A DNA stretch of 64,000 nt, from assembly GCF_001194135.2 (NCBI RefSeq), contig NC_068990.1:19400606-19464605 (forward strand), written 5' to 3'. A model generated the notes under the pieces. That model saw nothing but the letters and a program-made list of their open reading frames with translations. It was not told where the DNA came from and made no database searches. This DNA is from Octopus bimaculoides (Eukaryota). Position numbers and translations under genes: made by a program. Positions 11,964 to 12,699 of the stretch are shown piece by piece. Numbering within the stretch: position 1 is the stretch's first letter; every line of letters begins with the position of its first letter.

Positions 11964-11987
11964 TTTTTTTTTCTTTTTCAGGTAAGT
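11964..11987 (+). promoter_or_regulatory. Juxtaposed 3' and 5' splice sites (candidate recursive splice site)
   Basis: TTTTTTTTTCTTTTTCAG|GTAAGT, with AG at 11980-11981. Confidence 0.55.
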
Positions 11988-12699
11988 GGATTTTTTCATT
12001 TGAAATTTCAAGCAACAGATGTTTATACAAGTATATTCAGCCTACAAAGAAATGCGGCCCTTGACTTCGAGGTCACAACATTAATGGCTTCCTACCCCTG
12101 AGGTTATGTGTTATTTTCTTGATTTCTTCAGTTTCGTACATAGAATTTATATCTTTTCCAATATTGCTTAATTAATGATTGCTAAGGTTAATTGAAGTGA
12201 TATCGAGTTCAAAAGTTATCATAAAGTTGCCGATAAATATGAGAAAAAGTTTAGCACCAGTGAACACTTCGGTATAGCTGTATTACAGTTGTACGTTGAG
12301 AAAATTTTTAATGATCTTCCATATAGTTTTGGGACGACATGTCGCTACGCATCTCACCCGGTGTGCTAACGATTCTGCCGCCTTCACATAATATATATAT
12401 TACTAATTTTTTCTTCCTTATATATGATCTGATTAATTATTATTATTTTTCTTTGTACTATATATTTTTTCGTAAAATACAATTTCACTCAGAAGGTATG
12501 GATCGATCCGATCCGAAACAATTGAAAATTACGTTTGTTCAATGGGTTCGAACTACAGACATCGAGGTTTTGAAGCAAGCTCTTAAAACATTGGCTGTAC
12601 TGCACCTACAGTTACTATGTATATATATTTATATATATTTATATATATTTATATATATTTATATATATACTATGTATATATATTTATCTTATTTACTTG

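Follow-up and report, generated by a model that had tools for sequence, protein, structure and literature searches.

The window, by which we mean the whole 64-kb stretch of Octopus bimaculoides DNA analysed here, is a draft sequence of about 33% G+C in which repeats, similar in look to those of octopus genomes, are abundant and which is interrupted by 15 gaps of N (between positions 916 and 63924), nearly all of them flanked by TA, CA or GT microsatellites. Searches of the window revealed no Rfam family and no evident coding exon, and neither a host gene nor a downstream exon for the feature described below could be identified in it. By eye, two open reading frames, 1274-1822 on the minus strand and 14787-15236 on the plus strand, resemble the C-terminal ends of a retrotransposon reverse transcriptase and of a mariner/Tc1-type transposase; a Pfam search of both frames returned nothing at E values up to 0.1, and they are decayed relics at best. 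We also noted, at 46000-47300, an extended purine-rich stretch of GAA/AAG on the plus strand (GC skew +0.45, AT skew +0.24), from which the majority of the long minus-strand pyrimidine runs in our count derive.

The feature of interest, the coordinates of which are collected in Table 1, is a polypyrimidine tract that runs into a CAG and, immediately after it, into a consensus 5' splice site. On the plus strand, 11963-11987 reads CTTTTTTTTTCTTTTTC AG GTAAGT, and the context of the site is ...atcaC TTTTTTTTT C TTTTT C AG/GTAAGT ggatttt..., the slash marking here and below the position of a splice boundary. An earlier note on this DNA had described the pyrimidine run, the CAG and the GTAAGT, and all three are confirmed; the run, given there as 15 nt (11964-11978), extends in full to 17 nt. 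No AG intervenes between the A of the candidate branch point and the acceptor.

Table 1. Features of the site and of the RNA block that begins at it (positions are those of the window)
Feature	Position	Strand	Basis
Candidate branch point TTAAT, A at 11949, ~32 nt 5' of the AG	11946-11950	+	putative
Polypyrimidine tract, 17 nt, C T9 C T5 C, TT at -5/-6	11963-11979	+	sequence
AG of the 3' splice site, intron end at 11981	11980-11981	+	sequence and X13 contig
GTAAGT, consensus 5' splice site, first six bases of the exon	11982-11987	+	sequence; kept in the X13 contig; same in organisms B and C
78-nt stretch without substitution in organisms B and C, centred on AG/GT	11944-12021		ortholog comparison
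RNA cover, run X13	11980-12437		
RNA cover, run X15	12171-12483		
RNA cover, run X17	12267-12475		
RNA cover, run X14	12197-12347 and 12338-12586		
Transcribed block, exon of ~0.6 kb (0.6-0.7 kb), 3' end between 12586 and 12691	11982-12586	+	RNA cover
Best candidate downstream donor AAG/GTATGG (at 12496), would give a 514-nt exon	12493-12501	+	score 8.7
TA-rich tandem repeat (TATTTATATA)n; the RNA block ends at, in or just before it	12616-12687		sequence and cover

The core of the motif, CAGGTAAGT, occurs a single time when both strands of the 64-kb window are searched. The fuller pattern Y10-N-CAGGTAAGT, with at most one mismatch, was likewise found once; 100 shuffles that preserved dinucleotides gave 0.01 occurrences on average, which puts the motif far above chance within the window. 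As a donor, CAG/GTAAGT ranks first among the 3648 GT sites of the plus strand when scored with a rough 5' splice site weight matrix. By composition, tens of such sites would be expected by chance in a genome of a few Gb, so that rarity within one window cannot by itself exclude chance genome-wide. Only two other AGGTAAGT octamers are found in the window, at 14613-14621 on the plus strand and at 8403-8410 on the minus strand; the former has no preceding pyrimidine tract and is not ratchet-like, and besides the latter there is no further YAGGTRAGT on the minus strand of the window.

To follow the site at the RNA level, public runs of the same species were compared with short unique stretches of the window. 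Five RNA-like runs from two studies contain part of the region, and four of them, again from both studies, give cover within 11980-12586 only. One assembled contig from run X13 (480 nt, depth 11.8) matches 11980-12437 without mismatch and carries, 5' of 11980, 22 foreign bases, CTCGCACGAGCCGCTGCAAAAA (...GCTGCAAAAA), that are not genomic at this place and were not found in the whole window with up to 3 mismatches. In the canonical reading, an upstream exon ending in ...GCTGCAAAAAAG (AAAAAAG; ...CTCGCACGAGCCGCTGCAAAAAAG) would be spliced to 11982. This partner is GC- and CpG-rich (15 of its 22 bases, as compared with 33% G+C in the genome) and may accordingly represent a first or 5'UTR exon. 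In principle, the upstream exon could hide in one of the assembly gaps at 4042-4646, 5808-5997 or 7080-7337.

Since X13 shows no cover on 11560-11979, the contig does not reflect genomic DNA cover, and since its break matches the strongest regional acceptor to the base, a random chimera is unlikely. Placed on the minus strand, the junction would imply an intron that begins with GA or CT and not with GT; this reading was rejected, and the plus-strand one is preferred. Hence the split junction from an upstream exon into 11982 that was sought on the basis of the earlier note is present, in one assembled contig of one run, and plus-strand transcription over the site is supported. The acceptor half of the motif is used in RNA, and the first splice step rests on one contig. 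These data are to be read bearing in mind that contigs carry no strand, that the depth of a contig reflects expression poorly and that the assembler could drop low-depth pre-mRNA. The X13 contig ends 24 nt into the upstream exon. A 31-mer unitig would end there if a second X13 RNA shared the exon and the GTAAGT, as the unspliced start of an intron would, and a loss of coverage accounts for the stop equally well.

The RNA cover forms a discrete block. Upstream of the acceptor, 11560-11979 shows zero cover in X13, X14, X15 and X17. Downstream, the matches at 12691-12742 and 12771-12797 are repeat words from other copies, with no locus-specific cover, and the unique stretch 13002-13256 again shows zero cover in the same RNA runs. 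Further on, at 13690-14100, X14 and X17 contain 0.00 of the sampled words, and X13 and X15 are not among the runs that hold any. A different run, X39 (2023, type unknown), has 26% of the words sampled at 13690-14100, which may come from another transcript or from a DNA library. Given such a discrete block and the lack of multi-kb cover, the transcribed region looks like an exon. We saw no poly(A) tail, no canonical poly(A) signal and no 3' joint for it, and it may accordingly be either terminal or internal. Moreover, no read on 11560-12340 was found in three deep RNA runs from 2026, each sampled to about 6%, from which we conclude that expression is rare.

This pattern bears on three points of the earlier note. 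A saw-tooth drop in coverage at 11981 was not found, as judged from low-depth assembled contigs and not from total-RNA reads; instead, cover jumps at 11980, is over by 12586-12691 and is nil at both downstream stretches. The idea of a zero-length exon holds for the DNA, where AG and GTAAGT are juxtaposed, and fails for the sampled RNA, which keeps GTAAGT and at least 450 nt after it, so that in those molecules the exon cannot be called zero-length. Finally, the start of an ordinary terminal exon, named in the note as a case that would speak against recursion, fits the block at 11980-12586.

At the DNA level the block is single-copy and is represented by one contig of flat depth in DNA runs, except for a repeat fragment at about 12349-12379. 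These 31 nt, to which a stretch near 61610-61700 is related, match with 1 mismatch contigs of high depth and about 90 nt in length that occur in each of the four RNA runs and share another left flank, ATGTTAAAAGACAGGCGAAAATGCTGCCAA. This different, shared flank indicates that 12349-12379 is a fragment of an abundant transcribed repeat and not a locus-specific signal. Just downstream of the exon sit two SINE-like repeat copies (12694-12971 and 13270-13497), 76% alike over their alignment and each followed by (AC)n. The second copy reaches a word depth of 10^5 to 10^6 in the RNA runs, which means that the SINE-like family is massively represented in transcripts.

We did not observe any sign that the exon encodes a protein. 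The 39-codon frame that follows the AG had been translated correctly in the earlier note; it is not significant, since 13.7% of the plus-strand positions are followed by at least 39 open codons. Pfam returned no match for this frame, for the frames inside the exon or for the nearby transposon-like ones, and an exact-product look-up of a 139-aa frame inside the exon was also without a match. Among the substitutions found in related species, 3 of 7 fall on third positions, that is, without bias. Altogether, the region shows neither an open frame beyond chance, nor a Pfam homologue, nor a codon-position bias. The RS-exon-like open frame of the earlier note is a chance one. Its proposed end, GAG/GTTATG at 12103, is a weak donor (score 3.1) through which the RNA reads and which is altered in organism B (12106 A>G, 12108 G>A).

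With respect to donors that could close the exon, AAG/GTATGG scores second to the main site within 11950-12720; the X14 contig reads through it, and no joint was seen. A second candidate competing donor is CCG/GTGTGC at 12361, for which no joint was seen either. By comparison, joining the upstream AAG to GTAAGT gives AAG/GTAAGT, with a score of 11.8 as against 12.9 for the genomic CAG/GTAAGT in the same weight matrix.

The site is also conserved in two related species; the earlier note had named a lack of such conservation as a refuting result. Organisms B (run X19) and C (run X20) each yielded one orthologous single-copy contig, and both diverge from the window by 6-7% over 11560-12340 (about 6.8% around the site). 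The site is more conserved than its flanks: the substitution-free stretch spans the candidate branch point, the tract, AG/GTAAGT and the first 40 bases of the exon, and organism C differs in it solely by a T run of the tract that is 2 nt shorter. In organism B this 78-nt gap between substitutions is the longest, followed by one of 44 nt. Assuming uniform substitution and counting one lineage, the site would fall in a gap of 78 nt or more with a probability of 0.019, a test of modest power; conservation of the 24-nt motif taken alone has a probability of 0.18 by chance and is weak evidence.

Considering all the above results, we favour, with moderate confidence, a model in which a used and constrained 3' splice site opens a non-coding exon that is expressed and laid out like an RS-exon, re-splicing being only a candidate step. 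According to this model, the tract and CAG at 11963-11981 would act as an evolutionarily constrained 3' splice site of the plus strand, to which, in a few samples, an exon ending in ...GCTGCAAAAAAG would be spliced; this partner would lie 12 kb or more upstream, outside the window or hidden in a gap of the assembly. A non-coding exon of about 0.6 kb would thereby be opened at 11982 and would extend to about 12590-12690, with its end at or within the TA-rich repeat; most probably it is a last exon used alternatively, or an exon of an lncRNA or UTR. With GTAAGT at its start and, as it appears, AAG at the end of the upstream exon, ligation of the two would re-create a near-perfect 5' splice site, AAG/GTAAGT, and hence the so-called RS-exon architecture. 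Were the transcription unit to include a 3' splice site further downstream, the exon could then be removed again by way of the regenerated donor, and the rare 0.6-kb RNA might be the fraction that escapes re-splicing or is polyadenylated first.

The same junction would be expected from a true zero-length ratchet point in a long plus-strand intron, in which the upstream exon is joined to 11982 first and the regenerated AAG/GTAAGT is subsequently spliced to a downstream exon, the X13 contig being a short-lived recursive intermediate. The site does fit the fly consensus in its strong tract, in the TT at -5/-6 and in having a putative branch point at about -32 (10.1101/006163), and this reading is also in line with a junction into the site, a first intron segment of at least 12 kb, conservation centred on AG/GT and a genomic CAG/GTAAGT that is the strongest 5' splice site of the window. 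However, a recursive intermediate or the nascent RNA of a long intron should continue near the same depth for kilobases (10.1101/006163), and the saw-tooth should persist accordingly, whereas the block of cover seen here spans about 0.6 kb and stops short of 12691. Moreover, fly ratchet points are used constitutively wherever their host gene is expressed (10.1101/006163), while cover at our site is confined to 5 RNA-like runs; a host gene, a downstream exon and a lariat are all missing for it. We therefore consider this explanation unlikely, though well short of negligible.

It is improbable, in our view, that the motif arose by chance in AT-rich, pyrimidine-run-rich non-coding DNA and that the junction is an assembly or cDNA chimera, the site then having no function. 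A single contig stands behind the junction, tens of motifs are expected in a few-Gb genome, the whole window had been scanned for anything striking, and three deep RNA runs show nothing. On the other hand, a chimeric break would have to hit exactly the AG of the best regional acceptor, the cover in four runs would have to be confined by coincidence to the 3' side of the site with nothing upstream, and the site would have to fall by chance within the longest conserved stretch. As no record gives the library type of X13, one might also think of an insertion or rearrangement of the DNA at 11979/11980 in the X13 animal, with the contig reading out of it. Such a variant is very improbable: X13 has zero cover upstream (11560-11937) against a depth of 11.8 on 11980-12437, its cover profile resembles that of the runs flagged as RNA, and all DNA runs of the species show the reference arrangement.

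Fly ratchet points are recognised by their motif, junction reads, saw-tooth, lariats and conservation (10.1101/006163). Of these marks, our site displays the motif and the conservation, a junction with weak support and no saw-tooth, and it is thus a candidate ratchet point, short of demonstration. It shares with the Drosophila ratchet points of Ubx, kuz and luna (Duff et al., 10.1101/006163; Joseph and Lai, PMC8605326) the (Y-tract)CAG/GTAAGT and the TT at -5/-6, as well as a first segment of more than 10 kb, an upstream-exon junction into the site and a conservation peak on AG/GT. Unlike them, it is followed by an RNA block of about 0.6 kb, no saw-tooth was found and its use is apparently rare; the cryptic RS-exons of flies measure about 50 nt as compared with about 0.6 kb here.

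A further parallel is offered by RS-exons that are expressed or annotated in vertebrates and flies (Sibley 2015 as cited in PMC8605326; Blazquez et al., PMC6224609). In those exons, as here, the start is a 5' splice site consensus, so that joining to the preceding exon yields a recursive 5' splice site, and the exon is seen in RNA. Like many cryptic RS-exons, the present one is out of frame or non-coding. Both the layout, with an exon start that regenerates a donor, and the detection in RNA are found at our locus. Compared with the RS-exons described in these sources, the present exon is much longer and may be terminal, and no used downstream donor was seen for it. For RS-exons, the test of skipping through re-splicing is mutation of the donor, in a minigene or by genome editing, which should then give constitutive inclusion (PMC8605326). 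The exon also resembles alternative last exons, intronic polyadenylation isoforms and lncRNA exons in being discrete, non-coding and rare, in having a strong acceptor, in containing a repeat fragment and in ending next to low-complexity and SINE sequence. In contrast, a perfect and conserved GTAAGT at the start is unexplained for exons of this kind, and neither a poly(A) signal nor a poly(A) tail was found here.

Characterised cases of recursive splicing come from flies and vertebrates. With the very long introns and large neuronal genes of their genomes, cephalopods would be expected to remove introns stepwise as well; to our knowledge, this is undocumented in them. No text in the literature we searched connects octopus or cephalopods with recursive splicing, and the one place where the terms occur together is a reference list. 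That the present site is the first documented recursive splice site of a cephalopod, or of any lophotrochozoan, at which an intron of more than 12 kb is removed stepwise and an RS-exon occasionally escapes, is a claim we put forward tentatively, as possible rather than probable.

If recursion proves true, the locus would extend a known mechanism to a new phylum, which would be useful and not surprising, given that recursive splicing is regarded as common to metazoans (PMC8605326). If the exon is merely an alternative one whose first bases happen to be GTAAGT, the finding would be ordinary. A single site does not change the field. Should the transcription unit reach a downstream acceptor, the regenerated donor AAG/GTAAGT would be expected to be used. 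In any event, the locus provides a concrete and conserved test case for stepwise intron removal in cephalopods, one in which the junction of the first step is already visible in public data.
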